Source of the DNA: Eutreptiella sp. 'Long Island Sound 2002'
Taxonomy: Eukaryota; Protista; Euglenida
Direction: 5' to 3'
DNA length: 64,000 nt
Assembly (NCBI GenBank): GCA_964036045.1
Contig: OZ038379.1
Coordinates: 16,368,001 to 16,432,000 of the forward strand
In this document: piece after piece, positions 15,171 through 53,700 of the stretch
How positions within the stretch are numbered: the stretch's first letter is position 1
How the letters are laid out: every line of letters starts with the position of its first letter
Translations under genes and position numbers: made by a program
The notes under the pieces: model-generated
Database searches by the model: none
What the model saw: only the letters and a program-made list of their open reading frames with translations
What the model was told of the DNA's origin: nothing

Positions 15171-15199
15171 GGGTTTGTTGTTGTGTCCGAAGATTCCCA

Positions 15200-25300: not shown

Positions 25301-28300
25301 GCGTCCATGGGCGCCAAAGGCACGCGATGCTCCATGGGCACCAATCGAAAATTTTGTCCACTTTGCACCCCAACACTATCCTTAAACCCAACCCTGACCC
25401 TAACGCCCACCCCAACGCTACGCCTAGTCCTAATCCCTAGCCCTAACCCTAACCACGTTTGAATATTGGGACCGAGCCGGTGAGGGAAGGAGCATCGTCT
25501 AGGAGAGTTCAACGACAAATGAGGTACGGCTTGGAACGTGGATGAGAGCGGCTCAAGAGGGGCTCAAAATGAGCTGTGTTCATCCGTTTTTGCACCACAA
25601 GCGTACTAGGATCGTTTTTGGAACACCATGGTTTTGACCCATTTTTGAGCCCTTTGTGGTCCCAAATTGGCCCATTTTCAAGGCCCTTTCGCCCTTGAGA
25701 GGGGCCAAATTTGCTCAACATTAGCTCAAAATGGGCTCATTCCACTTGTTTGTGCACCCCAAATAGTCCAAAAGTATGTTTGGAAAAACACATTTTTGAT
25801 CCATTTTTGACTGATTTTTGGTCCCAAAACAACCCATTTTCAAGGCACTTTGTGACTTCAGAGAGGCCAAAATGGCTGGCAATGGGCTCAAAATGGGCTC
25901 ATTTTACTTGTTTATGCACCCCCAATGGTCTAGGATCATTTTTGGAAAAATACATTTTTGACCCATTTGTGACTAATGTTTTGTCCCTGTGCAGCCCATT
26001 TTCAAGGCATTTTCAAGGGATTTTAGGAGGGCAAAACGGGCCACCACAAGCTCAAAACACTTGTTTTGGCATACCATGTGGTCTAGGATCCTTTTTGAAA
26101 AAAGTCTTTTTTTTTTGCACCCGGTGGAGCTTGTTGACCCATTTTGGCACCCACCTCGTTGGGCTACCTCTTGCAGCTTGCCGCAGCCCACGGGGGCCCA
26201 CACGGCAATGATGTGGCAAACGCAGCCATGAACGAAAATTTGGGGATCTTGTCCAGCCCAATCAACATGGTTAGCATGGCTGAACCAACTGGCTACAAAG
26301 GTTAGGGTCAGGGTCACCGAGCTGGTGGAACCATTCTTGGTTTTATAACCCTTTTTAGTGTCTAGGGTGGACCTACCAGGTTTAGCAGCAGCAAGCAAGC
26401 AGCAAGCAAGCAAGCAACAGCACACGCGAAATGGGTAAAAATCAGAACTCCGTCGTGGTGCTTTGGATTTGGTTGAAATTTTGGTGCATGCTACCTATGG
26501 GTGTGAAGTACAATCACACAAAGTTGGAGCGAGAAACTCAACGGTGGCGGCCGGGAACGGGATTCGCAAGTGGCGGACCTCAGTTTCAAAAACTGCAGTT
26601 TAGGGCCAAAAAGAGCCATTTTTGGGCCAAAAAAGCCTGGGAACACATTCAAAACGGCCAAACGAAGGGAAACGGTGGGTACACTCCACATGCGGCTTGA
26701 CTTCCCCGTGTCAACGAGCTCTCTGCGGCCCTCTAACTCCATGATATGTCCCGGAAACGGCCCAAAAAGGCCCCAAGAAGCTCCAAATGCCGACAGCCAC
26801 AAACCAAGAATAGGCCATATCTTTGGCTACATGGCTCAAAATGCGATTCCGAGGGCACCTACTCCACCCGGAACCCCCCACTTTTTGTGGTTTCCACCCC
26901 TCAGAATTGCCCAAACGGACACCTAGACCCCAATACCTAGGCCCACTAGGCTGCGGCAAGCTGCAAGCTCAAGCCCAAATAGGTGGGTGCCCAAATGGGT
27001 CAATAGGGTCTAGTAGGGGTAAAAAGATGACTTTTCTCAAAAATGATCCTAGACCATGTGCGACGCTAAAACAAGTGTTTTTGGACCGTTTTGAGCTTGT
27101 GGTGGCCCATTTTGGTCCTCCGAAAATCCCAAAATGCCTTGAAAATGGGCCGTTTTGGGACCAAAAATGGGTCAAAAATGGGTCAAAAACGCGTTTTTCC
27201 AAACCTCATCCTAGACCATTTGGGGTGCACAAACGGGTGAAATGAGCCCATTTTGAACCCAATTTGGGGCATTTTGGCCCCTCAGAAGTCCAAAAAGCCT
27301 TGAAAGTGGGCCTCGTGGTGATGGGGTTCACTTGCAAGCTTATTTCACTTTGTCAAGAGCCATCAATGTGTGAATCATTCTTGATGTCCCTCACCAGTCA
27401 TAGCTCATGTTCCCTCCCCCACTAGCTCGGTCCCAATATTCAGTCTTGATTAGGGTTAGGAGTGAGAGATGTATCGGCAATGATGAAACCAACGGCCGCC
27501 CCCAACGTCGCCGCCGCCACCGCTCCCCGGGGCCGAGACACCATGGAGCCGAGGACATGACGACGGCCCGAGACCGCCGCCATACACGCTGCATCCCCCG
27601 CCCTTTCACGCGACGGCACAACCCGAGGGCCTGGAGAGATTGGAGAGGTGGGTCGGTATGTGTCACAGGGAGATACAATGGCAACTCTTGTGGCCTCACC
27701 AGAGGCGACCCAGTCACAACGTGGATGGCAAACCCCATTGGGAACCTTTCCCTGTCGGCTTGATTCCGCGAGGCCTCCGCCAACACGGGACTGCGGTGTG
27801 GCCAGCTCCCGCAGACAAAACGAAGGGATTTGCTCGCAGGCAGGCCCGGACCGGGCGGAAAAGTGGCCGCACCCAATGACGGTCACACTCTCACACAGCA
27901 CAGCACCCTGGCCATGCCCATCTGGAGGCGTGACCCGCCGAGATGTGCAGGGCCCACATGGGACCCTTCACTGCAGCAAAGGCACCGACCATGGATCTAC
28001 CCCCCCTCCTAGCCAACACGGCCGTATAAGCCAAAATTTGGGGCCCCACGGCAGCTGTGATGAGCGCCAGCAGCCCGCTGGGGCCGCCGCCCGCCGGCCC
28101 ATGGCCGCGGGTCGCCACCGGCATGCCTTAGCACACACAACCATACGACAGAAGCAGCACACTAGGTCATGTGACCGAACCACATAACACCACACGTTAA
28201 GCAGGGATGCGCGGGGTGAACCGCAAGCCGGGACCGAGTTAAGGGTAGGACTGGAGTGCGTGGGGTGAGGATCGTAGGGCTCAACGAGATGCTAATCAGG

Positions 28301-31300
28301 CAACTCGGTGGGAGGCACAAAGGTGTGTGCACGGCGCCCCACTGCGTCAACACCTCTTATGCTGTTATTCCTCCAGACTGTATTCGCGCACACAACATGG
28401 TAACGAGGAAAACACCAGAAATCCCGCCCGGGGGACTGGGTGTGCACGCGGTGCAATTATTACAATTACGCCCGTCACATCCGATGCCGAGCGTGCCGAG
28501 CAGCCAATACCGCAACAATGGCCCTTGGAGACTGGTTATTCCCACGATGCGGCAACGGCCACTGGAGCCAATGCACAAAATGCAACCAGTGCCACGAACC
28601 CCGCCCGGAACCGAGAAGTGAGCCCAGCAGGCCGCGGCAGACGGCATCAGGGGTGCTAGTAGCAGTGGATACCCAGAGCTTGCCAATACAGAACAACGGG
28701 TACTGGGCGTACCGCATCTGCCCGCACCGAGAAGGATGACGCCGCTGCCTTCCGCACACCACGAGGAGACGGCAAAACACCCAAAGATTGCATATCAGCC
28801 GGAGATGCAGGACAAAGTTATCCCATACCCTCAGTCACAAGCACACGGGGCAGAACAACAGCCACCGCTCCCACCGGCAACTAGGACGCCGGAGGAGGCG
28901 CCCACAGGACGCGAAACCCTAGTGGAACGACTGCAGCGTGTCCAGTCCAGACCAGAGGAAGTGCCCAGTGACCGTGAAGCTCTGACGGAGCGGCTGAAAC
29001 GCGCTCAATCCTGTCCGGCAAAGATGGGAACACCGTACAAGCGGACTAACATCACCCGGATGAACAGGCAGTGACACCACCGATGCACGGAGAGAGATCA
29101 CTATGCTGCCACCAGTAACCGGGGCGCTGGCAGACCGTAGATGGTAGTGGAAGGATCCTACAGTGCGATCACGCTGATACTGTTTGGCCCACGCGCGCCG
29201 CCGCCGCCGCCGGTGATAGGAGGGAGAGAAGACATGTGTTTCGCTTGCCGTAGTCATCTGTACATACTCTCGTTATCACTGCCTTGGATTGAGTCTTCAA
29301 TTTGAAGGCATGGCCGTGGCCAGGCGGCATACTCGGTAGTATCGACAGGAGAAAGCAGTGTCCCCTCTCTTTGCGAGGGGTACGCCTGCTTTAAAGGTAC
29401 TATATGAATCGGGCGGAGCACCCGCATTGTAGCAAAGCACCTGAACTCACCTTTGCAGCTTTTGGACTATGTTTACTGGACCAAAAAAAAAACCAACTGG
29501 CTGCAAAGGTTAGGGTTAGGTTTATGGTGATGCTATGGTTAGAGGGAGGGCAAGTGGAGGTAAGGGGTGCCTGTGCCCCCCCCCCCTGCCTCCCACCCCA
29601 AATCGCCCCACCTGGACCCCCCCCAACCGACCCTCCCACGCCCCCCCTCAGAGCCCCTCCCAAAACACCCCCCCCCCATTGCCCCTCCCAGACCCCCCCC
29701 TCCCAGCCCCCGCCCCCCCGGGGGCCTTCGACCAACGGTGAGTTGGGGGGGGAGTTGGCGTCCAGGACCGAGGAGTCGCCCCCCCCCCCCGGGACACCTT
29801 GACAGATCCACAGGAATCAGAGCATCTCACCTTGACCCAGGTTGACCCAACACCTTTTGCGGAGCAAGCCCGGGTCACAACAGACATCAACTACGTGGGA
29901 ACCCGGCGGCTGCAAGAGCAGTTGCAGCCGCTGTTGACTCCCAAGGCGCACGTGGTGTTTGTGTCAAGCACCATGGGTGAGCGGGCGACGGCCTCGATGT
30001 CTGAAAGCCTCCGCGAACAATTCTTGTCTCCCGAGTTGACTGTAAAGGATTTAGATGGGCTTGTGCAGAACTTCGTGACCACCGCTCAAGATGGGAGCCA
30101 TGCCTCGAAGGTGTGGCTTGTGTCTCTCCATCCCGCACTGCATTTTGGCAGCCACCTTCTCATCCACAAACGAGTCGTTTCTGGCCAAACACACAGCCTT
30201 TTTTTCGTGGCCCTGGACATGTACCATGGTGCGTTTATGGGCAGCAGAGACTCTAATGGGACTGCGCACCTGCAGTCTGAGATTTGTGTTGCTGCACGTG
30301 ATTCTGTCTGCCCAATACTGCGGACCGTTTTTTTTGAGTTGAGCCAGACTGGGACCTGATTGGACCTCCCTGCCAACCCGTTGTGAGATGGGCACCCTGC
30401 CCAAATAGCACGAGGTGCCGTCTCTGTCACTGGTTGGCACCATGGAAGTGACGATTCTCTGCATCTGTTGAGGTGAGGATGGGCGTAATTCTACACCTGT
30501 TGCACCTGCTACACTTGCAGCCTCTGCATCAATCGCTTCAGGGCTCTGAAGGACTGCACAGGGGCAGTTAGACAAGCCGTTACTGCTGAGAAGTCAAGTG
30601 GCGGTAGGTGGTTTTTGGCGGTTGCACATGCGGCGGGCAGGGCTGGGGGCGCAGATAACTGCTGTTTTGGATGTGGTGGTGGTTATGGAGGGAGGGGAAG
30701 GTCCCCTTCTTCAGGAGTTGAAGTGAGATGGTTGAAGCGCAGGCGGTCTGCGGCTGACGTCATGCTGAGTGTTGCTCTCCCTGGGCTTCAGGAACGCACG
30801 TAGAAGGCTGCCCGTCCACACAGCGGGAGGAGTTGTTTCCGCAACCTTTAGTGCTGCTTACTGCCGTTTATGCCATGAGGGGTTGTCTTCTGCCTGTGCT
30901 TGCTTTTGAATTATGGGGCAACACACTGCGCCAGAGGTTGCAGTAGGTACATATGGGGCCCTTGGACTACGCTATCACAACAATTGATCTGAGCTGCGTT
31001 AAAGCGGTTGGCGGCATGCAAAAGGAGAAGAGAGGTAACACAACAGTGTTTTCCCCCGCCATCACCAATCCATAACAGGACTTTGTCTGAAGCAAAGGGT
31101 GGTTCAGTACGTGCCCTCCAGTTGACATGCGGGTTGAAAGAAGCCACTGAGTGATCCATAGACCGGTGGACCGCTAATATTGTGCAAAAGCCAGAAAATG
31201 AAATGGCGGTAGGCTTCTTCAGAAGAGCTGTGTGCACACGCCGGATCCTCACGAGCCGGTCCACAAATCAAAAAGAAGATTGCAAGGCAAGATATTCAAG

Positions 31301-33463
31301 AAACACCACATCAATGTGCTGCCACGGGGCCTCCGGCTGCCAACTGGGTTATGACCATAGGTGGACATTGGTGACTATTGTTGGGCTGTTGTCTTGCATC
31401 TCCGGAATCGACCGTTGGGGGCGTGTGCCCTTAACCACAAATACCACCTACCCGACCCCCCCCCCCCCAGGCCTTGTGCCAACCCCCTCCCTCCCCAGTG
31501 CCCCCGGCTAGAACCGCCCCCCCTCCGTCGGGGGGCTCCCGCTACCAACAGAGGGGACCCTATGAGCCCACTGATGAGCACATCTCGGTCTGTTCGGATG
31601 GTTTGTTCCAATCCCGAGCATGGAGGCGGTGGAGGGTTGAGCAATGAGGGGGTGGGCAAGTTGATTCACATTAATATGGACAAATCGGTGCATGAACCAT
31701 CAGAGCTGCTCTGTAGAAGGGCCTAAGAGACAGGCAGGATGGATCCTCGTGCAGATGCATTGGGCCTACTAACATATGCATCGTACTTAGGGATGGCCCA
31801 ATACGTCGTATGGTGTTGCAAAGGCTGCAGTCACGGCATATGCTCGGATCCTCTCACGCAGCCCAACGAACAACCACGCCTACTCATGTTGCCCAGGGTT
31901 TTGCAGGACAGGTGTGCTGCTGTGCCCTAACCAAAGTGCACGCTGTCAGGCCTACCTCGAGATCCGGGATGATATTAACAGCTCAACTCATTTTGGATTC
32001 GTTCTGTCGTGTTGCGCTTGGGTTGACCCTCGGCCGGTCCCACTCCTTCTCAATACGAGTGTTCTTGTGGTAGGTGCCTCTGTTTCGTGCGATTTCCATT
32101 TGAATTCCCAAACATGAGGTATTGTTGATGTTGCTTCGGCATGGCAGATCCTACTGCAGTCCCATGCAGCAGACCCTGGAACTGTCCGCAGCCTCTTGGC
32201 CGCAGCTCCTCTTTGAGCAATGGATCTTCCATATTTCTTGGGGACATTCAGAAATTGCCAACTTTGTGCGTTTCGGTACTTTGTGGGATTTTCCCCCAAA
32301 ATTTGCTCTGATGTGCAAACATGTCATCACGTAGGGGGTGTATGTGTATATTTTTTGAAATCTGTGAGAAAAGGCTATTTCAGAAAAGTATGGGGTTTTT
32401 TTTGGGGGGGGGTAGGTGCTCACATTTTTCAGCACAGCGCAACACACTGGACGGTGCACACAAACATGGCACTGCACAGGTGAACCATCTTTATTCTGAA
32501 CCATCGTCATCATCTGCATTGCCTTTTTCAGGCAGGGCTGGGGCCCCATTGGGGCAGACATCCCCTTGTTTGTGGACAGGGACAGGTTTCTGCTGATGGT
32601 CTATGTGGCTGCTTGACGACCTGTATGCACCTGCCAGCCACTTGTACACATCCCAAAATACTGGGCTGCGAAAGCAGTGGCCTCAGTAGCGGACAGAATG
32701 TTCTGCTCTTTGTGAGTACATGCAGGTTGCTGGGACGTCGCAGTACGAGCCTTTTTGGCCTGGCTACCAGGCTCGGTTCCGAGTTGACTGCACCCACTAG
32801 ACACCCCCAGAGCGAGCTCTCTTCCGCACCAAAGGCTTCTGTGGTGCATCGGGGGAGGCAACAGCACGTGGCGTGAATTTGTAGGCAGACATGGTAGCTG
32901 CCTGCTGACAAAAAGGGGCAGCAAGCAACACAGGCACCGTCCAAAACGGACGAAATTCTCAAACATGTCGCCAGTACAGCATGCAGACCCAGGGTGCTCC
33001 AAAAAGCCTTTTTCAAGGGCTTTCCGAATATACCCCACATACCCCGACCTCTGGGACACTCAGTGAGCACAAATGAGGCAACAAGGGCTCCGACCCCCAA
33101 AAACGCACAAAGTTGGCAGAATCGCAACCGTCCAGAGAGATATGTTGAGGGCAACACTGCTGATGTAGAGTCCGGGGACTTTCTCCTGAGCCCGGTGTGG
33201 TAACACACCGCTGGTTTGTCCATAACTGACAAAAACAGTATTCTCGTGGCGGGTGTGATGGTGGGTTTGTCACGCTTCCGTGCTTCGCAGGCATGACCCA
33301 GCGGGGCTCATTCTTCAGCCCGATGTCGTGGGTATTTTGGGCCGCTGGCTGGACGATTGGGCAGTCTGCGTATGCAGGAGCTGACACGCCCGTTTGGTTG
33401 CTTTTGGACACAGATGCGCCAGAGACCGGGCGATTCTACCGAGGCAGGAAGCAGATTTCATGA
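22059..33463 (+). CDS. Short-chain dehydrogenase/reductase, carbonyl reductase (CBR1-like); join(22059..22361,29841..30110,31791..31911,33291..33463), 288 aa
   Basis: Motifs TGANRGIG, HNAG, FRM|VDPTPF (CBR-type FKxxDPTPF), VFVSS, GWPNTSYGVAK (YxxxK), CCPGFCRT|GM and GADTPVWL...TGRFY. All three introns are GT-AG with matching phases (0,0,1), and the total of 867 nt is divisible by 3. Confidence 0.93.
23788..24141 (+). other. Intronic ORF of unknown function (117 aa; small beta-rich N-terminus plus S/P-rich tail), probably repeat-borne
   Basis: MDLSIGDRVFYT...ATVVG...LHLEY resembles an SH3/KOW-like barrel. It lies in SDR intron 1 between recurring GGCTTTGCCGC and AGCACGGCG motifs. Confidence 0.3.
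25453..26190 (+). mobile_element. Element B' (truncated relative of element B) inserted after CCCTAA repeats
   Basis: Follows CCCTAGCCCTAACCCTAA and begins ...TGAATATTGGGACCGAGCCGGTG like element B. It has amplified CTAGGATC...TTTTTGGAAAAA subrepeats and breaks off at GCAGCTTGCCGCAGCCC back into hAT-element sequence. Confidence 0.7.
26311..27449 (-). mobile_element. Element B, reverse-oriented copy inserted in a TTAGGG tract
   Basis: Reverse complement of 49714-50868 and 50877-52029. Flanked by GGTTAGGG on the left and TTAGGGTTAGG on the right; has subterminal inverted repeats and a (GCAA)n microsatellite. Confidence 0.88.
27461..29490 (+). mobile_element. Retrotransposed insert (non-LTR fragment or retrocopy) with RanBP2-type zinc fingers, A-tract and long TSD
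   Basis: AACCAACTGGCT(A/G)CAAAGGTTAGGGT occurs at 26283-26308 and 29491-29516 but only once in the uninterrupted copies 2 and 3. An A10 tract lies at 29483-29492. The zinc-finger frame is at 28431-28620. Confidence 0.65.
28404..28739 (+). pseudogene. Two RanBP2-type zinc fingers (second degenerate)
   Basis: GDWVCTRCNYYNYARHIRCRAC and GDWLFPRCGNGHWSQCTKCNQCHEPR; in-frame TAA at 28401 upstream. Confidence 0.75.
29841..30110 (+). CDS. SDR exon 2
   Basis: Acceptor CACCTTGACCCAG; VDPTPFAEQARVTTDINYVGT...DGSHASK; donor GTGTGG. Confidence 0.92.
31791..31911 (+). CDS. SDR exon 3 (catalytic YxxxK)
   Basis: Acceptor TCGTACTTAG; GWPNTSYGVAKAAVTAYARILS...CCPGFCRT plus one G; donor GTGTGC. Confidence 0.92.
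32235..33139 (-). mobile_element. Non-autonomous Sola1-like element (subfamily 2) in SDR intron 3
   Basis: TSD ATAT (32231-32234 and 33140-33143). Degenerate TIRs both carry GCCAACTTTGTGCG. Interior is similar to 36936-37788 and to the ends of 42317-45492. Confidence 0.75.
33291..33463 (+). CDS. SDR exon 4
   Basis: Acceptor CGCTTCCGTGCTTCGCAG, phase 1; (G)MTQRGSFFSPMSWVFWAAGWTIGQSAYAGADTPVWLLLDTDAPETGRFYRGRKQIS*. Confidence 0.9.
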
Positions 33464-36400
33464 GGCAACAGGAGATCGCGGATGTGGTGCTGAAGTGTTG
33501 GTGTGTTGATTATGCCGTCAATAGGCCGCTAGGGTTGTGAGGTGTAGCAGAACGATGCCATCACCCCCGATAATGCATCTGGCTGCACCCAACCTCACCG
33601 ATACCGATGCAGGGCGCACCCGTTCTGGTGTGATGCGCGTGGCACGTGTCCGGGTCTGACACGCCACGTCCCGTGCACGCGCGCCGCGGTGTGACGCGCA
33701 TCGCCCACCCGCATCCAGGTATAGCGCGCTGCGTTGCACGCGCCCCGGTAAGGAGCCCCACGGAATTTCCTGACATTTTTCATCAAGGCACAGGGGCGTA
33801 ATCATTGCTCCCTGGATACAGCACGGCTGACACAGGCATTCCAACCAGCAGGTCCGTGTCCCCAAAATCAGCTTCCGCATCTTCAGGGTAACGTCATGGG
33901 CACATGACACCAGCTGTCACACCCCGTGCAACGAAGTCAGGTCGCACAGCCGCTGCACGCTCAGGGCTGCGCAACCGCGACCACTGGGTTGTGCAGGCAC
34001 AAAATGTCAGTCGGCGGGCAGATGGAAGAATAGTCATGCCAGATATCGAGCAGAGTGAAGTAGAGCTGAAGATGATGCTGTTCCAGAGCGTGTTGCATGT
34101 CCATGCCGGATCAGCGAAGCTGCGGTGTTGTGTGGTTTGCAGGAGGGCATGCTCCGAGGTTGTGAAATTCCCGAGGCATAGCTGAATTGGCTGAAGGGCT
34201 GAAGGCATTGAGATGATTTGCACTTCGTTGCGGGGGCAGTGTACTGCTTCATGGGAAGGTTGTCGCATCCGAGTGCGTACCTGGGATGGCGTTGCAGGGC
34301 ATTTCGGTTCCGAAGAACTGCTTAGGGGGCTGGGCGCCTCGCAGGCATTCTGCTCCGAAGCCACGCGCGGTCGTTGTGCAGCCTGTGCAGCCTACGTGAG
34401 GAATGCCGAGGCTTCTCCGCTGGTTGACGGCGTGGTGGCCGTTTGAGGTCGCAGATTGCCCAGACTTCAGACTTGATTGCCGTACTCACCGTTACATCTA
34501 ACCGCCAGTCCCATATGCAACATAAACCTGAAGCCCAGCTCAGACTAGCGTCCGCCGCCTCAAACATGATCATGTGGGGCTGGTCCTACTGAGTCATGCA
34601 CCAGACGTGGCATGGTCCCCACTGGGGTCCGTGTGTGCAGAAGACCGGCAGTACTGAGTGTCTGGGCTGGTCCTGACGAGATGCAGTCGCTCTGCTGGAC
34701 GCCAGTGGCGGGTCTGCCCCCGCTCCTACCCCGACCCTCGTCCGCTTGGGTCGCCTTTATTGGGACGAGCGCATACCGTGCACGTCACATCCTGCTGGCA
34801 CTCGTTGGGCCATGGTGCTGGTAAACCTGGGTCGGGGACCGTCGGTAGCCCCCTGCCTGGCCTTCGCTCTGGCGCTCTCCGTGTGCCATCAATTGCTAAC
34901 TCTGAACGCTGTCCCATGTCTCTGAGTCGCGTTCCAGCTTGGGATGCCCGTCCGCCGTCCTCCGTCCCCCATCAGTGGATTTCTGGTAGACGCTACGGGT
35001 CATCTGATGGCTGAAGACTGGGGATTAGCTTACCCCACTGCAGTGTGGACCCGGGTCACCCCTCCCCCTCCCAACGCTTGTTCTTCTCAAACAGTAGTTT
35101 CCATTGACTTCTTCAGTCGAGGCCAGAAGGGCAAAAAGCAGGCAGCTGTCTTCCAGTCCTCCCTCGAGCTTGTGAAGAGGGTATGGCGTATGGCGGTGTT
35201 CTCTCGTGTTCATATGCCGAGCAGTCGCAATAGCTCCTGATCTCTGAACTCATCACACAGTGCCCTTGCCACGGTATGGGAAGGTGAGGAAGAACGCTGG
35301 TGGAGCTTCACTAAGACTCGTGCCCCCCCTTCTTGCCAAACACAGGTCGCGAGCTGCACCTCCACTCGCGCCCATCGTTGTTTGGGAATTGTCATGTGTT
35401 GCCAGGTCAAACCAGAAATCAGATGGTGCAGGATCCCAACCCAGTGCACTGTACCCCTGTGTACAGTACGAAACCCTCTGGCGGGGGTGCCTGCATGACA
35501 GGCTTGACGGATGGCCATGGGCAGGCAACCTGTGCAAGCCTGATGGGTATGAGGGGGAGCCTCCTGCTCTACCGACGGGATGGTCTTCCTTGGCGTCTGG
35601 CGATCCACATGGAAAGCCTTGATGGGGGAGTAGTCATCTAGCCTATGGGCTGTGCTCCTTTACATGATTTCCGTCCATACACCTTTCCTTTTGACGAAGG
35701 GCCTCAGCCTGCACGAGGCATAAAATCACCGTTGCGCGAAAGAGTCTCCGAAAAGGTTCAGGTGTGCAGTTGTAAATTTGGGTGGGTTCTACATGCAAGC
35801 GGCAAGTGCACACACATTGAATGCCTGTATGAACGTTTCAGTAGCTATGTGAACATAACTGTGTTGGGCTGGGCCATGTCAGGTTGATGCTTCATTGCGC
35901 ACCAGAAACGCCAGAAGAGGGCATAAGGGGGTTCCATGGGGGACAAATTCTGTTAGGCAAATTCTGAGCGAAGGTTTTGTACATAATTTGGTTCCTTCTT
36001 GAGTTCAAAGTACACGTATTGTGATGTGTTGGTTGGTGGCTCCGGATTGTCTCGACCAAGATGCTGTGCTCGCCTGCTCTCGTCCAAAGAGCTTGAAGAT
36101 GTGTGCTTGATGACCTGTGGGTGCAGAGTGAGTTCTCTGCATGCCCTTTGGGCTGTTCACACATTTCCTCCTGCCATGGGCAATCTTTGGCCACCGTACA
36201 TCATTTGTCCACCCATTTGGCAAAGAGTTGGCACAAAATTTCGCGCTGGAATGTGCTGCAGCAGACTTTCCCTTGCACAATTCTTCCCCCCCCCCCCCCC
36301 CACCCACCCACCCCCACACGCCATTGTGTGTCAGTGGTGCTCACCTCGCCTGAATGGATCGCCGGCACATGCCAGTGCATGCCTGGCGCAGTGACTCAGT

Positions 36401-36935
36401 GAACACAAAACTGCTGCCACAAATTAACAAGGTGCATATGCATAAGCTAAACAAGTAATCGCACAAATGTGAGCAAGATGTGCTTGCGCTTGAACAACAA
36501 GAACCTACACAGGACAGCAACAGGCAGATTTACACTTGCATAATCTGAAAGACGAAACCTTTCCCCAGCGCACCTCCAAGTCTTGTACATTGCAGTGTTG
36601 TACATTGCAATTTAACAAACTATGCAAGCAGTGGCAGGCGGCAAGGGTATTTACGATTTCTGTCTGTGATGAGGATCGGGCTATTTTCCTTAGGTTGCTT
36701 CAACAAAAGCGAGAGTAAGTGTTGGAGAGTGCTCCTCTGGCAGTTTGCGTTTGTGCGCCAAGTGCCATGAAGGTCATACCTGTGAGAGTGACTGGAAAGA
36801 CACAACAACAGTGGGGGCACCTTGAGCGTAGTGTGTGCAACAGAAATGTTTGGCTGGTCGTTGGGCTGTACCAAGAAACTTGTGGGACAAAGTAGTAATG
36901 TGGTCGCCCACCACCACTCAAAGATGTTTACAAAT

Positions 36936-37788
36936 CTCTCTGGGACATCCGTTTCCTGCCAACACGGAGCGTTTTCACATTTTTTTCAGACTTTTCTCAA
37001 CTTTTGGTCTAATGCACCAAAATGTCGGCACCTTGGGGGGGGTATGTGTATGCTTTTCGAAATCTGTGAGAAAACGCCATTTCAGAAATGTATGGCTTGG
37101 GGGGGGGTCACAGTTTGGCACACAGAGCTGCTAACGGGAGGACACACAGGGCACAGGCAATGCTCCAGGGATCACTCACTATTCCGAATCCGATTCGTTG
37201 TCATCGTTGCCCCTTTCCACAAGGGCCGGGACTCCATTGGGGCACACATCCCCCTGCTTGTGACTGGGAATATACTTTTTCAATTTTTCCCAATCCTGTA
37301 GCCTGCGTGGCTTCACTGGCACCCACCCTATGTTCAGGGGCATGGTCCACAGGCCGTCAGTTGTGAAGTCCACATTTCGCTGTTTGGTGAGCTGGACCTT
37401 GCGCCATGGAATGGCCTCACTGTACCCTGGGTTTCTTGGCCTGCTTGGCAGGACGCCGAGTCACACACACCCACTCTGCACCCCCAGAGCGCGCCCTTTT
37501 GCGAAGCAACAGCACGCTCCGTGAATTTGTATGCGGACATCGTACCTGCCTGTTGACAAATAGAGGCACAAAGCAACACAGGCACCGTCCAAAATGGACG
37601 AAAATCTCCAACATGTCGTCAGTACGGCATGCAAACCTCGGGTGTTCCAAATAGCCCCTGTCAGTGGCTTTCCGAATATACCCCACATACCCCCCCCTTT
37701 GGGACACTCAGCAGGCACAAATGAGGCAACAACGGCACCAACCCCTGAAAACGCTCCGTGTTGGCATGAAATTACGCGTCCCAGAGAG
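36936..37788 (-). mobile_element. Non-autonomous Sola1-like internal-deletion derivative
   Basis: TSD AAAT (36932-36935 and 37789-37792). TIR CTCTCTGGGAC...GCCAACACGGAGCG. Retains the transposase 3' end (37179-37435, matching ~44985-45240). Confidence 0.85.
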
Positions 37789-38820
37789 AAATGTCACCTT
37801 GTATGTCTGTACCCTCTCAGGCCTCCAAATGGCTATTCATAAGCTCGTTTCGGTGCCCGTTTGGAAGGTGGTCAATTTGCAGGCTTTCTCAAGCACTATG
37901 TCTTATAGCAAACAGTGTGCGCCATGTGCACTCAGCGCAAGGATACGCCCTGTGTGTTGCTCAATGCTTCCTCTTCTTGATTTGTTGCTGTTTTTGGGTT
38001 TGGGGTGCCTCCTTGGCCCTTTTGAGGGCGGGGGGGGCAGATATTCAGGGCTGGAACCTTTCTGTAGACCTGCACACCATGTGAACAGTGTGCGACAACA
38101 CCACCAGCAGGGAGGGGGGGGGTATTTCCATTCACGGGCACCGGATGCGTTCCATGCATGGTGCAGTGCTTACTGGGCAGCAGTCCAGAGGTAGCCATTG
38201 CGTTCAAGGGTTCGTCGCAGAGATTTGCGTGCATTCGTTATTTGTGTCACCTGTGGGACCTGTGGGGACCCCTGTCAGATGTTTGCACACCGTGAACCGC
38301 CTACGGCCAGTGAAACAATCCCAGGTGCCAGCATGGTGTGCCTGCGTGTAGAGCGCCTTCTCATGCATGGCAACCTGGGCTATTGCCTGGTGAAATACTC
38401 GAAAACGTGGGTGCTGTGCAAGTCAACCCCCCCAAATGCCATGTATTGATGGTCAACATGCCGCCCCCGACCTGGGCTCCCCAGGCACCGCGAAGGGGGC
38501 GGGTAGGCATGCCCTTGCTATGAATGTGTCTGACGAATCTACCCGTTTGCACGGGTGCTCATCAAGGTGTGTGTGAGCCCGTCACACCCGTTGATGTGCT
38601 CCCCTGCTCTGATGTGTGCCCCAGACGCGGATGGGCTGCTACAGCCCCTGAGCCCATCCGTTTGTGCAGGGCCCCATCGATTTGTGGGTGCCCATCAACG
38701 TGTGTGTCAGTCCATTCATCTGTGCAAAGCTTCAGTTTGCATTTGATTCCATCCGCAGACTGACATGAGCTGGTCATCGTATGTGTTGAAAGGAAGCGGC
38801 AACTGACAGGTTGCTGCACG

Positions 38821-38833
38821 TTGCCTCCCCCAG
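38821..38833 (+). promoter_or_regulatory. Putative splice or spliced-leader acceptor upstream of the SGNH hydrolase start
   Basis: TTGCCTCCCCCAG ends 32 nt before ATG 38866. Confidence 0.45.
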
Positions 38834-38865
38834 GCCTGCGTTCCCGGACCTTCGCTTGTCGCTTC

Positions 38866-44900: not shown

Positions 44901-47900
44901 TAGAGATGACAAAATCCAGTGGTTGGATTTTGGCAAGACACCTAACCCTGAAAACCTTGAGGCCCATCCGGGTTTTGTCTGGGTAAAATCAGGGTACAGT
45001 GAGGCCATTCCATGGCGCAAGGTCCAGCTCACCAAACAGCGAAATGTGGACCTAACAACTGACGGCCTGTGGGCCATGCCCCTGAACACAGGGTGGGTGC
45101 CAGTGAAGCCACGCAGGCTACAGGATTGGGAAAAATTGAAAAAGTATGTTCCTAGTCACAAGCAGGGGGATGTGTGCCCCAATGGAGTCCCGGCCCTTGT
45201 GGAAAGGGGCAACGATGACAACGAATCGGATTCAGAATAGTGAGTGATCCCTGGAGCATTGCCTGTGCCCTGTGTGTCCTCCCGTTTACAGCTCTGTGTG
45301 CAAAACTGTGACCACCCCCCCCCCCCCCCCAACCCATACATTTCTGAAATGGCGTTTTCTCACAGATTTCGAAAAGCATACACATACCCCCCCTAAGGTG
45401 CCGACATTTTGGTGCATTAGACCAAAAGTTGCGAAAAACCTGAAAAATTGTGAATTTGCTCCGTGTTGGCAGGAAACGGATGTTCCCGAGAGATATGACC
45501 TGTGCCATTCCCAAGCCACCCCTCATTCACCTCATATTCTGTGGCGAAGTCCACAATTGTGGTTTCTTTTTAAGACCCATTCATGTCCCATTCCACACAA
45601 GAACTACATTGAATGCCTACTTGACCACCGACACCGACACCAACACCAACACCATTTCCCCTTGCAAGTGAGTTTTAACGACTTTTGGGGAGACCTGGAG
45701 AGTATCTCCAGAACGCTGTAATAATCCTGCCTGATGTCCTTCCAAACTTCCCACACGCAGCGAATGCCAACTATGTTATGTGAATAGTTTCGGAACGCAG
45801 AAGTGTCTGTGTGTTTACCCAATCAATCTCATGGACGGTTGGGATTGTGGCCGGCTCATGTGGGGTTGGAGTGGTGACTGCTGTGTGCGTTGCATGCCGA
45901 TGTTTGGGTCAATGCCACCCTCCACTCAACCTGCTGGCATGCACCCTGGATGGCGAGGTGGCTGCTTCTACACCTATGGATATGTGAGTAGACAGGACGT
46001 GACAGTTTCTGAGCCGCAGCATTTTGTCACATGCCCAGTTGCTTGGATGGGAGGGCTCGTGCACCTCTTCACACTGACACACACCATACACATTGCTGCA
46101 CCCATGCCGTGTGTGTAAGGCATCGGCACTAAAGATTTTGTGTCCATATCAGACATTAATTTTGTGTTGTTGGCATCCTTCGTACCGATATCTCGCTAGT
46201 CATATCCTGGGGATGGCTGATTGGGGACCTTATCCCTGTTGCCAAGAACATGATTTGGATCTGCTTGTGGGGATAGTTGATAGGCCGTCCTATCCATGCC
46301 GCCACATTGGTGGTTGCACTGTCCCACATACCACATAAGTATTAATTTTTTGCACAAATATTTGATCCCCAAGTTGCGAAAACACACACAAACAAAGCGA
46401 AAAATACGATTAATTTTCAGGTGCATACCCTTCGCAAAAATGAAATCCAACCAAAAAAAGCAAAAAGAATTTCGCCCCCCGCTCTGTGCTGCAAAGCCAC
46501 CAGAGGCATGGGTACTAAATTGTGGCAGCTTGAGGCAAAATCAAGCTGCTGGCGCTGGTGGTGGCCGGCCCGCACTTGTTACAACGGACTCTCTGGGCCC
46601 TTGTTGTTGCTCATTGTTGTATGCTCTTGCATCGCCTTCTGTGGAATTGTTTCAGCATTTTGATGTGCCATCTGCGCTGTTATTGGCAAGCTGACAAACT
46701 GGTAAACTGAGAAAGACTAGTAGACATGAATCACCTGGTACGCTTAGTTGTTGGTCTGCATGTCTGTGCTATGGACTGCAATCCTAGAGTTCAACTGACC
46801 CACATTTGTGTGCATGTGGAGGTATGGAGTGCAATCCCAGAGTCCAAGCAGGTCTTGTTCGGGAGCACCAGGATGATTGAACCAGAACCAAAAAAAGGAG
46901 GCCACACGCAAAAAAAAATTGCAAAAATGAAAAAAATTCCGGTTCAACCCAAGACAGCTCCACCAAAATGAATTTCGCAGAACAAATTGCAAAAAAAGAA
47001 ATATTTCTTTCCATTGTTGGCTGCCTTCGCAAAATTTTTGTGGATTCTCCACATTTGTGGATACCACACCTTTTGCAGATGCGGCATGCTTTAGGGTATC
47101 TTGTTGTTTATTGTGGGACAGTGTACCAGTCATTACACAAAACCGTACCAATTTTCATGGAAGGGCTGAAAATAGGGTACGGTGATGACAGGATCCTAAC
47201 AGGTCAAATACAACCGCAAGAGCTCATTCCATCCCCAACACTACATTTCTCACCAAAACAGTGAAGGGCAATACACTGTATAGTCACGTTTTATATTGTA
47301 AGGTGTACAGGGCTATAAACGGCTATTTTTGGTAGTTCAATTAGGATCCTGTCATTACTAAGTGTAGGTATGCCGAAAAAACATTCCAATACTTTGACAC
47401 ATATTATATTGGGGCATGCCCCCCCTTCCCCATCCTTCTCCTGGATCCACATGATTTTCCTCACGTCCTGACCTGTTTCGTTGCATCAGCCCAGGAGATG
47501 TAGGGATAACCGGGTAAATCTAGTGCTCCGAAGGTTTCTGACCCGCAAGGGAAGGGCTCTCGTCCTCAGGATGGGATGACCCATTTTTTCGGCCTCTGAG
47601 GAAGCAACACTCAACAGCCGTCAGGTAGCCTCTAGGCAGCATTTGGCACAGCAACAGCCTTCTCTTAGTCGTAAGGGGGTCAGCCACTCGCACATTCGGG
47701 TTGAGCCTGAGAGTTTCAGTGAATTGATTCTGGACTCCCCTGGGTGCCATCGCTCCTTGCCCCGTGCCCTATGCGATCTCTGGGCTCTGAAAGCCCGCTC
47801 CTTCCCCAGTTGGATGGTCGCCCATCCAAGATTTCTGTTGGTGGAACCCCTGAGCTTCAGTCAGGGCTTCAGTGCTGCCCTGCAAATGAAGGCCTGCCTG

Positions 47901-50740
47901 GTTTATGACCCTTCCGGCAATGTTTTCGTGTGGTTGCAGGAAGATGAGTTTCTAGCATGCTACGACAAGCTGCTATCTGACTTGCGATTTGTGAAGCCTG
48001 ATATGCCCATTGCAGTGATGACCACTGTAGCAGACTGGAGGTGTGTCAAGATATTCATGGCTGGAGGTTGTGCAGCCATGACCCGCTGCTATGCTGCACA
48101 CATCCGCCGACACCATTTCCTGTGAACTGACAAGGACGCAGTTGGATGAACTGAGCTGGGGCCGTCAAGATACATGCACACATCGCTTTCAAATAAGGCG
48201 CCTGAAAGCGCCAGAAGGCATAATGAGGCCTCAGAGCAGCCGTTGGCCCAGGAAGGACGAAACGGACCATTGTCATCATTGGCACCCGCCAACGACCTGC
48301 GACTGCCGAATGTAGAAGGACTACAATTTCAGTGCAGTGCTCGAGTATCGCACAGTAGAGACGGGCGGCTTGCACAGGGAATGATTGCCTATACACCAGG
48401 GGTGGGAGCGGGGTCCACGAGACATACCTCATGAGCAAGCAGACTTGAGGGCCATGTCTCCACAGCACTCCAAATTGCAAGGTAACGCTGTTGTGTTGTC
48501 CCCCTTGCACTGCTCGCGCTGGCAGGTGGCTTTGTGTTTTCTCGGCATATCCTGTCGATAATTTGAGCCATATGTATTGCCTTTAGTTAGAACCGTACGA
48601 GAGCCATGTTTTGCACATTATTTCTATGGATTCCACTGTTGTTGAAGTTCTGCAGCTAAAGCATGGGTGTCTAGTCATGGGAGGCCACAAGCTGTCCATT
48701 TATGCCCATGCCTTTGAATATGTGTGTGAGCCCAATCAGTGCTGGTCGAGTGATGGCATATTGTGTGACCTCTTTCACACGATGGGATCGCTCCGTTACG
48801 TGCGCACACCATGTGCCTCGAAGTAGTCCAAGCCTCCAATTTTGAGTCACTTCAGAAACGAACCATCCGGGGAGGATAAGAAAGGAATGGCACAGCCTCC
48901 CATTTTTGGCAATGGAATAATGAACAAATTCGTCGTTGTGCCTCACCCATGTACCACCTGTGCCCAAGCCTCACCCAAGCTCAGCTTGAATACTAGCCCG
49001 CAGCCAGAACACCGTTTTGTGCAGAAAGGCTTGCCATCGAGCCATCCTGCGCCACACCCTGCACCCTGCACAACAGCACACATATTTTGTGCGGCATGCC
49101 GCTTTGCTTGCCCTGTCCCTTCCACCCGCCTGGTTGTTGTCACAGGTTCCCCAATAAGCACCTCAGTCCCGAGCAGAAGAAGAGGGCATGGCGTAGCGGG
49201 GCCGACCCCATTTGGTCTGAGCGGGTGCATGCAGGAATACAAGAGTTAGCAGTGCAGGTGCTTTCTATGGGTGGGTGTAACTGTGCCTGCATTCAGGTCC
49301 ACGCAGGCAGCTGTGTATTCATGATCCCCCTCCCCCACCATTTGTGGAAACACCATCTGGCCCAAACGACAGCAGGCTTCATGTCTGCAATTTTTTGGAA
49401 GGATGGGATCGGGTGGTGCCATTACTTGGATGGTCCAAACAGCGGTGTCACGGGGGGGGGGCGACTCCGCGGGTCCTGGGACGCCAACTATCCCTCCCCC
49501 CCCCCCCCCCCTAGGGGCCTTCGGCCAACAGTTAGTTGCCAAAGGTGTCGCCCTCAGGCGTCCATGGGCGCCTAAGGCGCCCGATGCTACATGAACACCA
49601 AAGGTGCCTTAAGGAAAATTTGGTCCAATTTGCACCCCAACACTATCCTTAAACCCAACCTTGACTCTAACACCCACCCCCAACCCTCAGCCTACTCCTA
49701 TCCCTACACCTAATCAAGACTGAATATTGGGACCGAGCTGGTGGGGGAGGGAACATTAGCTATGACTGGTGAGGGACATCAAGAATGATTCACACATTGA
49801 TGGCTCTTGACAAAATGAAATTAGCTTGCAAGTGAACCCCATCACCACGAGGCCCACTTTGAAGGCTTTTTGGACTTCTAAGGGGCCAAAATGCCCCAAA
49901 ATGGGTTCAAAATGGGCTCATTTCACCCGTTTGTGCACCCCAAATGGTCTCTGATGAGGTTTGGAAAAATGCGTTTTTGACCCATTTTTGACCCATTTTT
50001 GGTCCCAAAACAGCCCATTTTCAAGGCATTTTGGGATTTTCGGAGGACCAAACTGGGCCGCCACAAGCTCAAAACGGTCCAAAAAGAATTGTTTTAGCGT
50101 CGCACATGGTCTAGGATCATTTTTGAGAAAAGTCATCTTTTTGCCCCTACTGGACCCTGTTAACCCATTTCGGCTCCCACCTTGTTGGGCTTGAGCTTGC
50201 AGCTTGCTGCCTACTGGGCCTAGGTATTGGGGTCTAGGCGTCCGTTTGGGCAATTCTGAGGGGTGGAAACCACAACAAGTGGGGGGTTGTGGGTGGAGAA
50301 GGTGCCCTCGGAATCGCATTTTGAGCCATATAGCCCAAGATATGGCCTATTCTTGGTTTGTGGCTGTCGGCATTTGGAGCTTCTGGGGGCCTTTTTGGGC
50401 CGTTTCCGGGACATATCATGGAGTTAGAGGGCCGCAAAGAGCTCGTTGACACGGGGAAGTCAAGCCGCACGCGCAGTGTACCCACCGTTTCCCTTCGTTT
50501 GGCCGTTTTGAATGTGTTCCAGGGCTTTTTTGGCCCAAAAATGGCTGTTTTTGGCCCTAAACTGCAGTTTTTGAAACTGAGGTCCGCCATTTGCGAATGC
50601 CGTTCCCGGCCGCCACCGTTGAGTTTCTTGCTCAAACTTTGTGTGATTGTACTTCACACCCATAGGTATCATCCACCAAAATTTCACCCGAATCGGAAGC
50701 ACCACGACGGAGTTCCGATTTTTACCCATTTCGCGCGTGC

Positions 50741-50791
<51 letters not shown>

Positions 50792-53700
50792 GCTAAACCT
50801 GGTAGGTCCACCCTAGACACTAAAAAGGGTTATAAAACCAAGACTGGTTCCACCAGCTCGGTGACCCTAACCCTAATCAAGACTGAATATTGGGACCGAG
50901 CTGGTGGGGGAGGGCTATGACTGGTGAGGGACATCAAGAATGATTCACACATTGATGGCTCTTGACAAAGTTAAATCAGATTGCAAGTGAACCCCATCAC
51001 CACAAGGCCCACTTTCAAGGCTTTTTGGACTTCTGAGGGGCCAAAATGCCCCAAAATGGGCTCAAAATGGGCTCATTTCACCCGTTGGTGCACCCCAAAT
51101 GGTCTAGGATGAGGTTTGGAAAAATGCGTTTTTGACCCATTTTTGACCCATTTTTGGTCCCAAAACGGCCCATTTTCAAGGCATTTTGGGATTTTCGGAG
51201 GACCAAAATGGGCCACCACAAGCTCAAAACGGTCCAAAAACACTTGTTTTAGCGTCGCACATGGTCCAGGACCATTTTTGAGAAAAGTCATCTTTTTGCC
51301 CCTATTGGACCCTATTGACCCATTTGGGCACCCACCTTTTTGGGCTTGAGCTTGCAGCTTGCCGCAGCCTAGTGGGCCTAGGTATTGGGGTCTGGGCGTC
51401 TGTTTGGGCAATTCTGAGGGGTGGAAACCACAAAAAGTGGGGGGTTGCGGGTGGAGTAGGTGCCCTCGGAATTGTATTTTGAGCCATGTAGCCAAAGATA
51501 TGGCCTATTCTTGGTTTGTGGCTGTCGGCATTTGGAGCTTGTGGGGGCCTTTTTGGGCCGTTTCCGGGACATATCATGGAGTTAGAGGGCCGCAAAGAGC
51601 TTGTTGACACGGGGAAATCAAGCCGCACATGCAGTGTACCCACGGCTTCCCTTCGTTTGGCCGTTTTAAATGTGTTCCGGGGCTTTTTTGGCCCAAAAAT
51701 GGCTGTTTTTGGCCCTAAACTGCAGTTTTTGAAACTGAGGTCCGCCACTTGCAAATCCCGTTCCCGGCCGCCACCGTTGAGTTTCTTGCTCAAACTTTGT
51801 GTGATTGTACTTCACACCCATAGGTATCATCCACCAAAATTTCACCCAAATCCAAAGCACCACGACGGAGTTCTGATTTTTACCCATTTCGCGCGTGCTG
51901 CTTGCTTGCTTGCTGCTGCTGCTTGCTTGCTGCTGCTGCTGCTGCTGCTGCTGCTAAACCTGGTAGGTCCACCCTAGACACTAAAAAGGGTTATAAAACC
52001 AAGACTGGTTCCACCAGCTCGGTGACCCTAGCCCTAACCCTAGCCCTGCCTCTCACCCTAGGCTAGGGTCAGAGTGAGTGTTGGGGTCCAAAATGAAGAG
52101 CGACGATGTGGCAAAAGCAGCCATGAACGAAATTGGGGCGATCTTGTTCAGCCCAATCAACATGGCTGGCATGGCCAAACCAACTAGCTGCAAAGGTTAG
52201 GGTTAGGTTTATGGTGATGGTATGGTTAGAGGGAGGGCAAGGGGAGGTAAGGGGAGCCTGTGCCCCCCTCCCCCCCTGCCTCCCACCCCAAATCGCCCCA
52301 CCTGGACCCCCCCCCCCACCACCCCGAATTGCCCCACTTGGACCCCCCCCCCCCCAACCGACCCTCCCGGACCCCCCCCCCCAGCCCCTCCTATACCCCC
52401 CCCCTTCGCCCTCCCTGAACCCCCCCCCCCCCCCCCCCAAGGGGCCTCCGGCCAACAGTTCGTAGGGGGGGTAGTCGGCGTCCAGAACCGAGGGGTCGCC
52501 CCCCCCGTGAGCGGTGTGTGTGGTGTGCTTTGGCATGCATTGCTGGTTGGCTCATTGTTTTGCTTGCTGTGCTTGCCCAACCCCTTTGCCCCAATCTCCG
52601 AGATGGCAACGTGATCCTCTTCGACTATTGCCAGATGCCCAAGCCACTTGGCGTAGTCCGAGGACACGTCACACACGGACAACGCCCCTGTCGAGGCGCT
52701 GTTTCCACAAACTTCAGTGCCCATTGTTTGCACTGGCATGAACACAGGGCATCACAGACACACAAAGCCATGCAACCGCCACACCAAACAGGAAGACGAA
52801 ACATAGACAAGAATAACACACCAAAAGAGAGGGCCTGCACAAACAGAAGGATGCATGCACAACACCCACACCTGGGTCCGCTTACACTTGTAGGGCAGAG
52901 GGGCCAAGCTTGCAGACCGAGGCTAGTCATTTGTGAGGGGAAAGCAGGGATGACAGGCCCTTCAGGGCCGAATCTACCCACCTTTCCTCAACTCAGGGCT
53001 GTGGTGAGGCTCTCGGCTCTACAAGTCATAGGTCTCCCTGTACCCTTAGGGCAGGGGGTTGGTTGCTTGGTATGGAGTCCTTGTACCGAGTACCTGGTGA
53101 GCACCACCACGTGTCTCACTGTACTGCGGTTGCCTCTTCGGACTGGTGAGACATCCGGAGACCGCCACTGCCCTAGCCGAAGCACGGGTGAAGCGGTTGT
53201 GTGGTGCAGTGCGCAGTGTACTCTCACAGCGGCAGTTATGAGGGGAGGCTTCCACTGGTAACCACTGGGGTGGATGCGTTGCACTGAGGGTTGTATCGGG
53301 CTGGTCTCACTGTACATCCTCACGCGGTGAGGCATGGACACTGCCTGGTCCATGAGAGTCACAAGCCCCCTCTGGTAAAGGGTCCCTTGCCCCTCTTGGA
53401 GGACTGACCTGTCAACGTGAGCCACAGGCCACATTCTCCTCTTGAGCATCCACGGGCTCCAGGCCACTCAGGACACTCCGAGAGTTAGACCCTGCTGGTC
53501 CACAAGACCTCTTGTGGCAGTGAAGGCTATGGACAATCCTGTTGCGCTGTCTCACTCATACACGGCCAAGGTTAGTGAGCTGAGACACAGGGATCTTGGC
53601 AACTTGTACCTAGGGGACACCAAACTAAGCGTGCATGAGACCCCCACCCCACCATGTGGAAGTCGTGCTCTCCTGGAGACCGTGACTGGCAACCCCTATT

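Follow-up and report, generated by a model that had tools for sequence, protein, structure and literature searches.

The window, that is, the whole stretch of 64,000 nucleotides that was analysed, contains three copies of a carrier MITE (M1, M2 and M3), and two of these hold copies of a non-coding repeat, element B. The features are as follows, in window coordinates.

25191..29793, no strand assigned: carrier MITE copy M1, with B1, B2 and another insertion of 2 kb inside it, flanked by the target duplication ACACCTTG (25183-25190, 29794-29801)
25453..26190, + strand: B1, a diverged subfamily relative of about 77% identity, with a 162-bp unit repeated 2.4 times
26314..27449, - strand: B2, full core, reversed, in the TTAGGG arm of M1
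49449..52509, no strand assigned: carrier MITE copy M2, with B3 and B4 inside it, flanked by the 8-bp target duplication AGCGGTGT (49441-49448, 52510-52517)
49714..50864, + strand: B3, full 1151-bp core, TCAAGACTG...CTCGGTGA as written on the + strand
49732..49744, + strand: subterminal inverted repeat ACCGAGCTGGTGG of B3, the putative 3' subTIR in the Helitron2 direction, followed by an 18-nt tail
50741..50791, + strand: (TGCT)13 microsatellite inside B3
50837..50848, + strand: ACCAAGACTGGT of B3, which pairs with the adjacent subTIR to give a terminal hairpin (the DINE-1 type "IR")
50850..50862, + strand: subterminal inverted repeat CCACCAGCTCGGT of B3, the putative 5' subTIR in the same direction, 2 nt from the end
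50865..50876, + strand: spacer CCCTAACCCTAA at the B3/B4 boundary
50877..52025, + strand: B4, full core, 94% identical to B3
59745..60497, no strand assigned: carrier MITE copy M3, with neither hexamer arm occupied, flanked by the target duplication GTTTGTGT (59737-59744, 60498-60505)

The four copies were located where the preliminary description had placed them, all inside CCCTAA-type tracts of the hAT-like MITE, although the ends that it gave for B3 and B4 (50868 and 52029) each take in 4 nt of flanking sequence. A BLAST search of the whole window found no further copy, as had been claimed. The full cores (B2, B3 and B4) are 94-96% alike; B4 lacks 8 nt close to its start and has a microsatellite expanded by (TGC)n, and the far end of B1 is missing through a deletion that also took about 80 bp of the MITE. 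With at most one mismatch, the spacer sequence CCCTAACCCTAA has 24 occurrences against 0.29 expected.

The anatomical features first reported for B (13-bp subterminal inverted repeats, a CAAGACTG repeat, a microsatellite and internal subrepeats) were all found in the sequence, and the subTIR pair ACCGAGCTGGTGG / CCACCAGCTCGGT is present in all full copies. Read in reverse, B begins with 5' TC and then, 2 nt from the terminus, the 13-bp subTIR; a hairpin partner, ACCAGTCTTGGT, sits 3 nt beyond this subTIR. Folded as DNA, the first 60 nt give a hairpin of -9.6 kcal/mol (z -2.29; 6 of 200 shuffles were equally good). The hairpin is followed by the microsatellite and about 160 bp of repeat-derived sequence, then by the matching subTIR, which starts 31 nt before the end of B, and the 18-nt tail. 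At the 3' end the only such feature is a conserved 6-nt palindrome, AATATT (fold -1.3 kcal/mol, z 0.25). The element ends in GGTGA and its ends are without T-runs. This layout of subTIRs and hairpin favours the strand opposite to that drawn in the preliminary description as the 5' to 3' strand of a transposon.

In one copy (L004_8597) both subTIRs carry an identical T to C change. Subfamilies diverge over the final 8-9 nt of the tail, an unusual feature at the 3' end of a Helitron, and the termini of B are no more conserved than its interior, as expected of decaying copies. The 162-bp subrepeats are tandem in B1 only, and no full-length B1-type copy was found for a far-end comparison across subfamilies. 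In line with the earlier statement that B lacks a credible ORF, no Pfam domain is recorded for any of the 120 listed ORF relatives. Pfam searches of the ten longest ORFs of the window also returned nothing, an Rfam search of 25000-30000 (E <= 1) gave only one chance sRNA match, a tRNA scan was negative, and neither poly(A), nor a ribozyme, nor a protein domain was found in B.

An independent public assembly supplied 11 further loci, and 45 element starts and 45 element ends were tabulated. A CCCTAA-like hexamer adjoins 41 of the 45 starts and 40 of the 45 ends, so that about 90% of the sampled junctions are CCCTAA-like, and TTAGGG adjoins none of the 45 starts and none of the 45 ends. When only distinct start flanks are counted, 26 of 30 are CCCTAA-like. 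Repeats of the longer CCCTAAA type are absent from the loci, and a spliced-leader motif has no match in the window; a dinoflagellate source was rejected on these two results. The base of the host after the 3' end is T at 40 of 45 junctions; the base before the 5' end is indistinguishable from B's own initial T, so that this junction gives no reading on a TT-target rule. Strand polarity, described as fixed from the window, is constant there and in the 11 loci of the other assembly. The proposal that B is a non-autonomous mobile element targeting telomere-type hexamers in a single orientation is supported.

Two clean comparisons of filled and empty sites revealed neither a target duplication nor hexamers carried by the element. 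Both come from locus L007, where a whole B (1-1151) is nested in another B at position 1111 (CACTAAA^AAGGG), with a run of five A kept. The nested copy adjoins a single TTAGTG-like motif; CCCTAA is missing from its far side, and no hexamers came with it. The recipient B in turn lies in a MITE at AAACCCAA^CCCTGACCC, where empty MITE copies read through. An empty form of the M2 site, CACCTAA followed directly by CCCTAG (49712 joined to 52025), is present in contigs of run X1. The mobile unit is the 1151-bp core alone, and it integrates without target-site duplication beside a CCCTAA/TTAGGG-type hexamer.

The carrier is an element with TIRs and 8-bp target duplications (M1, M2 and M3 in the window, and loci L006 and L010), features that fit a hAT-like MITE. 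The majority of the sampled copies of B are found in this MITE family or in a carrier like it. The restriction of B to transposon-borne tracts holds in the window, but not genome-wide, where other contexts occur among the 11 loci. Likewise, the MITE is a landing pad for B in the window, but that description is too narrow, given that B also sits in a second carrier repeat (L002, L004 and L012), in a tract without a match to the window's MITE (L008) and in another B (L007). From these contexts, the target looks like a hexamer-sized motif rather than the MITE or a long array.

It had also been suggested that the MITE disperses B. Consistent with this, three MITE copies with different 8-bp duplications hold B at an identical internal junction; however, in the tree the B copies at this junction do not group as nearest relatives of one another, so the shared junction is explained equally well by repeated insertion at a preferred site. 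Orthology of the junction copies, and with it the movement of MITE::B composites as units, is thus unsupported by the tree.

Rough read depth points to some 10^4 copy equivalents of B. An older and a younger subfamily are distinguished in the star-like tree, and the two are mixed in the arrays of L006, L004 and L010. Different subfamilies have struck the same tracts repeatedly, and some arrays later grew by local tandem duplication.

We consider B to be, with fair probability, a rolling-circle transposon of the Helitron2/Helentron lineage (HINE/DINE-1-like) that is non-coding, non-autonomous and high in copy number. The HINE/DINE-1 anatomy named in the preliminary description is supported when B is read in reverse. 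Membership of this lineage rests on anatomy because no RepHel element with the termini of B was found. An autonomous partner with the same termini, for which a search had been recommended, did not emerge from the flanks of B in the window or from the 11 loci: no RepHel was present, no element combined B termini with a RepHel ORF, and the ORFs beside the L005 copy comprised only a UCH fragment. Tested as a partner, the RT/RNase H element adjacent to B in L004 proved dissimilar to both ends of B. The single match to a 20-nt terminal motif in metagenome contigs lies in an apparently bacterial coding region and is attributed to chance.

On this rolling-circle reading, a RepHel transposase (HUH nuclease plus helicase) encoded elsewhere would recognise the 13-bp subterminal repeats and the terminal hairpin, nick the element and peel off one strand, which would then be joined to the T of TTAGGG in a single-stranded target. 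The polarity of B would follow from strand-specific recognition of a target motif of roughly 6 nt. Speculatively, the conserved tail segment CCCAATATTC, which resembles a C-strand hexamer, may take part in target choice.

An unlikely alternative is a recombination-driven satellite, in which B, accompanied by a few CCCTAA units, is released as a circle or mispairs via its flanking hexamers, and re-enters any CCCTAA tract by homologous or microhomology-mediated recombination; polarity would then be automatic and no transposase would be needed. Insertion of a bare core does not explain the hexamer spacers between copies, which vary by whole hexamers (1-4 units), or the 12 extra bp of B2 relative to the duplicated target copy at 29487-29520, and this alternative draws on both. 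It also draws on the 12-copy array of L003, where 10 of the copies match their nearest neighbour at 99-99.9% identity, and on the higher-order repeat of MITE fragment plus B in L009. The L007 insertions argue against it, given that the nested copy brought no hexamers and met no CCCTAA on its far side, and that the MITE site is a clean core-only insertion. So do targets as short as 1-2 units, the exact core ends, the paired subTIRs with their hairpin and one covarying change, and the frequent derivation of neighbouring copies from different subfamilies. Recombination probably accounts for the growth of arrays, not for first arrivals.

TRAS/SART LINEs and endonuclease-lacking Penelope-like elements are, like B, present strand-specifically in telomere repeats; they are retroelements that encode RT, carry either 3' tails or telomere repeats at their termini and show 5' truncation, and B showed none of these features. 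That B is a non-autonomous retroelement copied into telomere repeats by such a LINE or by a Penelope-like RT, as had been considered previously, is very improbable. The polarity (CCCTAA)n-element-(CCCTAA)n is what these systems give, and RT/RNase H elements do adjoin the B arrays in L004. However, B is unlike this neighbouring RT element and lacks poly(A) or a simple 3' tail, target duplications, element-borne hexamers and a tRNA head, hammerhead or other Rfam match. Identical TCAAGACT is carried by 36 of the 45 starts and there is no 5'-truncation series, and subterminal inverted repeats with a hairpin are features of DNA transposons.

Finally, B might have belonged from the outset to the interior of a longer ancestral hAT element, with the short MITE as a deletion derivative of that element. 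This idea might appeal to the prevalence of B in this MITE family or similar carriers and to clean deletion of B by recombination between flanking hexamers, but it is scarcely credible: the nested copy of L007 and the reversed B2 both contradict it, and B occurs in either arm, its orientation flipped with the hexamer strand, at several different positions within an arm, in other contexts (L008, L005, the second carrier), within another B, and in numbers that vary and draw on mixed subfamilies.

Target choice by Helitron-type elements is poorly understood beyond an AT or TT dinucleotide, and B would be the first case known to us of hexamer-targeted rolling-circle integration outside the Paramecium germline. 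The exact ends of B, its lack of target duplication and its near-absolute one-strand hexamer preference constitute a clean natural data set on sequence-specific rolling-circle integration. MITE-borne interstitial telomere-like tracts can turn into nurseries of kilobase satellites; arrays that reach 12 or more units, formed by targeted insertion and then local duplication, bear on the origin of satellite DNA, and B bears on the misassembly or misannotation of "telomeric" signals inside chromosomes. A bolder and doubtful proposal is that a Helitron2/Helentron-type transposase reads the six-base TTAGGG on one strand and has filled the interstitial telomere-like tracts of other transposons with about 10^4 copies; recognition may then go through pairing with the conserved CCCAATATT tail, by analogy with target reading in IS200/IS605. 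If true, telomere-repeat targeting would have arisen a second time, independently, among rolling-circle elements, and the choice of target would be guided by sequence and possibly reprogrammable.

Among known systems, B can be compared with HINE/DINE-1 elements, which are non-autonomous Helentrons (Thomas et al. 2014, PMC4067079). These start with TC, have 12-15-bp subTIRs 2-4 nt from the 5' end and an IR with its 5' half lying inside the 5' subTIR, and are non-coding, with a microsatellite and central repeats (PMC4067079); bivalve HINEs carry satellite-like repeats (PMC7492417). B resembles them in being non-coding and very high in copy number, in lacking target duplications, in forming tandem arrays, and in its 13-bp subTIRs, nested inverted repeat, microsatellite and longer internal repeats. 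For HINEs, insertion at TT within T-rich DNA, T-runs and a clear 3' stem-loop are reported (Thomas et al. 2014, PMC4067079), whereas B has neither T-runs nor a clear 3' stem-loop and chooses a TTAGGG-type hexamer. Its 3' subTIR is also nearer the end (18-nt tail), starting at a distance below the range of mite HINEs, in which the 3' subTIR lies 38-60 bp before the 3' terminus (PMC4067079), and inside that of Fusarium.

Helitron2 elements combine a 5' hairpin with asymmetric TIRs, of which the 3' repeat lies 20-40 bp before the end (PMC5148889). Like the Fusarium Helitron2 FoHeli, B has a 5' TC, a 5' hairpin that includes its terminal inverted repeat and a short target of specific sequence (TNAT^ in FoHeli, PMC5148889). 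The 3' repeat of FoHeli is placed some tens of bp before its end, and that of B starts 31 nt before its own. FoHeli, unlike B, is autonomous and 5-11 kb long, with other termini and another target.

Helitrons of Paramecium aurelia, first reported in 2026, insert into C4A2 repeats with absolute strand bias (BMC Biol, PMC13085455); they cap germline chromosome ends and represent a third RepHel clade (PMC13085455). B shares with them C-strand telomeric repeats on both sides, an absolute orientation bias and repeats that lie outside the element, and their abundant ORF-less derivatives full of satellites are a further likeness. Unlike them, B occupies interstitial hexamer tracts inside other transposons (MITEs for the window copies) and has asymmetric TIRs of the Helitron2 type. 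If the Helitron2 direction is right, B's own strand would lie on the G-rich strand, as against the C-rich strand in the Paramecium Helitrons.

The four copies of element B, a non-coding mobile repeat, that had been described in the window were confirmed as three full cores and one truncated relative. The core measured 1151 bp, was bounded by TCAAGACTG...CTCGGTGA, and was 94-96% identical among the three full copies. The far end of the fourth (B1) had been removed by a deletion that also took part of its carrier, and BLAST returned no copies in the window beyond these four. The hexamer tracts holding B were parts of a ~750-bp TIR element present in three copies (M1-M3); the separate 8-bp duplication of the target at each of them is consistent with a hAT-type MITE.

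Copies of B and of its carrier MITE in the window
49714-50864, + strand: B3, full core
50877-52025, + strand: B4, full core
26314-27449, reversed: B2, full core
25453-26190: B1, ~77% relative, far end gone
25191-29793: M1, carrier of B1 and B2
49449-52509: M2, carrier of B3 and B4
59745-60497: M3, both hexamer arms empty

All four copies were set in degenerate CCCTAA tracts, or a TTAGGG tract for reversed B2; CCCTAACCCTAA (≤ 1 mismatch) occurred 24 times in the window against 0.29 expected. Telomere-like tracts were not all occupied, since the hexamer array at 1038-1290, within a 197-bp tandem repeat (999-1408, 2.1 units, an (GTTAGGGCTAGG)n tract in every unit), was without B. Positions 27461-29486 of M1 held a 2-kb insertion with A10 at its end. 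MITE sequence was duplicated on its two sides over ~28 bp (CCAACTGGCTRCAAAGGTTAGGGT.AGG, 26283-26313 and 29487-29520), and the insertion resembles a retroposed sequence already in place when B2 arrived. Other families contributed a 336-nt inverted repeat pair (37099-37434 and 44985-45320, 96%) and a 264-nt direct pair (32855-33118 and 37503-37766, 84%).

Scanning metagenomes with the terminal 20-mer of B gave a single match, in an apparently bacterial coding region, which was attributed to chance. A spurious 163-aa ORF of B, used as bait, retrieved 226 "proteins" from long contigs in one ENA assembly; 11 loci of 20 kb each (L002-L012) were taken from it regardless of flanks. Window and loci together supplied 45 starts and 45 ends of the element, whose junctions were tallied. 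A hexamer ≤ 1 mismatch from CCCTAA adjoined 41/45 starts (26/30 distinct start flanks) and 40/45 ends, and TTAGGG adjoined none of either. Because the loci were picked without regard to flanks, the fixed strand polarity proposed for B relative to the telomere-type hexamer is real and genome-wide. The proposed confinement to tracts of the hAT-like MITE held inside the window but not elsewhere.

Other contexts of B
L002, L004, L012: second carrier repeat
L008: hexamer tract without match to the window MITE
L005: old copy, no clear hexamers at the site
L007: nested within another B

The second carrier repeat of L004, with its B array, was flanked by two 88% identical copies (640-5719 and 12486-17557) of a ≥ 5-kb retroelement with a weak RVT_1 match, and an RNase H ORF lay nearby (18361-19062). 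When this RT/RNase H neighbour was tested as a partner for B, the two shared no sequence.

At L007, a complete B (1-1151) split another B at position 1111 (CACTAAA^AAGGG), leaving the run of five A intact, with no target duplication and no hexamer brought along; a lone TTAGTG-like motif can therefore act as a target. The recipient B itself sat in a MITE at AAACCCAA^CCCTGACCC, a site uninterrupted in empty MITE copies of the window, and the empty form of the M2 site (CACCTAA|CCCTAG) was present in contigs of sequencing run X1. Together these sites indicate that only the core moves and that it inserts precisely. The hexamer stretch accompanying B2 was 12 bp longer than in the duplicated target copy kept at 29487-29520, and spacers between B copies were present even where the first copy adjoined the first hexamer of the tract. 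Both could reflect tract-length variation, "core plus spacer" transposition from arrays, or recombination.

The same internal junction was occupied by B in three copies of a related MITE, two with clear 8-bp duplications differing from one another (L006, L010) and one with a degraded duplication (L011). These B copies were not mutual nearest relatives in the tree, so that, as regards dispersal of B by the MITE, a preferred insertion position explains the common junction as well as joint transposition does.

Spacers within arrays were whole hexamers (1-4 or more), and at L003 10 of 12 full copies were 99-99.9% identical to their nearest neighbour, which shows that this array expanded by local duplication. 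A tree of 27 copies separated an older subfamily from a younger, star-like burst; the subfamilies were mixed inside single tracts at L006, L004 and L010, so those tracts were hit repeatedly, and B3 and B4 were not sisters, B2 being closest to B4. B-bearing tracts evidently turn into complex satellites, as at L009 (9600-16400), where a ~2.17-kb higher-order tandem repeat joined a piece of MITE to one nearly full B and one B fragment (858-1151). A head-to-tail junction at L002 (about 9885-9895) lacked the subterminal inverted repeat (subTIR), last 13 nt and hexamer (...CCAAGACTGGTTC|CAAGACTGAATATT...), and the partial B beyond it ended at position 372, directly followed by CCCTAGGGCTAACC-type repeats. 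Short palindromic strand switches were seen in hexamer spacers at L004 (8560-8597, 9730-9767) and L008 (about 11790) (CCCTAGGGCTAA; CCCTAATTAGG). A retroelement origin (TRAS/SART, Penelope) was not borne out: B had no poly(A), target duplication, or tRNA or ribozyme match, 36/45 copies had an identical start, and no Pfam domain was on record among the listed ORF relatives.

X1 contigs matched the unique window flank without differences at a word depth of ~27, and summed depth over B, a rough measure, was 0.5-2 million, which points to ~10^4 copy equivalents. Runs containing B included estuary metagenomes and metatranscriptomes. Contigs of one estuary metatranscriptome run (X12) covered B and MITE within 49379-52530 and left the unique flanks uncovered; this may be transcription or just DNA carry-over from a very abundant repeat.

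Anatomy of B, in order on the strand opposite to the + drawing
1: TC start
2: 13-bp repeat ACCGAGCTGGTGG, 2 nt from the end
3: ACCAGTCTTGGT, 3 nt past ACCGAGCTGGTGG and pairing with it (hairpin -9.6 kcal/mol, z -2.29)
4: (AAGC)n microsatellite
5: unique sequence
6: ~160-bp repeat, about 1.7 units (tandem x2.4 in B1)
7: CCACCAGCTCGGT, inverted copy of the 13-bp repeat
8: 18-nt tail, CCCAATATTCAGTCTTGA

The CAAGACTG "direct repeat" reported near both ends was present, and is reread as hairpin partner at one end and tail at the other. In one copy, both subTIRs had undergone the same T->C change. DNA folding of B gave no convincing 3' stem-loop, terminal T-runs were absent, and the last 8-9 nt varied between subfamilies. 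On the host side of the 3' end the next base was T in 40/45 cases; B itself starts with T, which masks the TT rule at the 5' junction. No autonomous partner sharing the termini of B was found in the window's B flanks or the 11 loci, so we infer the mechanism from anatomy and junctions, on which B is probably a hexamer-targeted, HINE-like rolling-circle element. Spread by recombination, the main rival, appears unlikely. The observation in the preliminary description stands, and its interpretation does in part.

This layout matches those of known elements. In HINE/DINE-1 elements (non-autonomous Helentrons) the subTIRs measure 12-15 bp, and the one on the 5' side, in which an inverted repeat is nested, lies 2-4 nt from the terminus; these elements also have a microsatellite, central repeats, no coding capacity and a TT target (PMC4067079). 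Helitron2 starts with TC and has a hairpin at its 5' end; its TIRs are asymmetric, the 3' repeat lying 20-40 bp from the terminus (PMC5148889). The HINE/DINE-1-type architecture first suggested is upheld by the subTIRs, hairpin, microsatellite and internal repeats. Telomere-associated Helitrons are noted in Drosophila biarmipes in a passage of a review. Paramecium Helitrons, described in 2026, show absolute strand bias when they integrate into C4A2 telomeric repeats and have many ORF-less derivatives filled with satellites (PMC13085455); B would be their Helitron2/HINE-type counterpart in another organism, on interstitial TTAGGG-type tracts.
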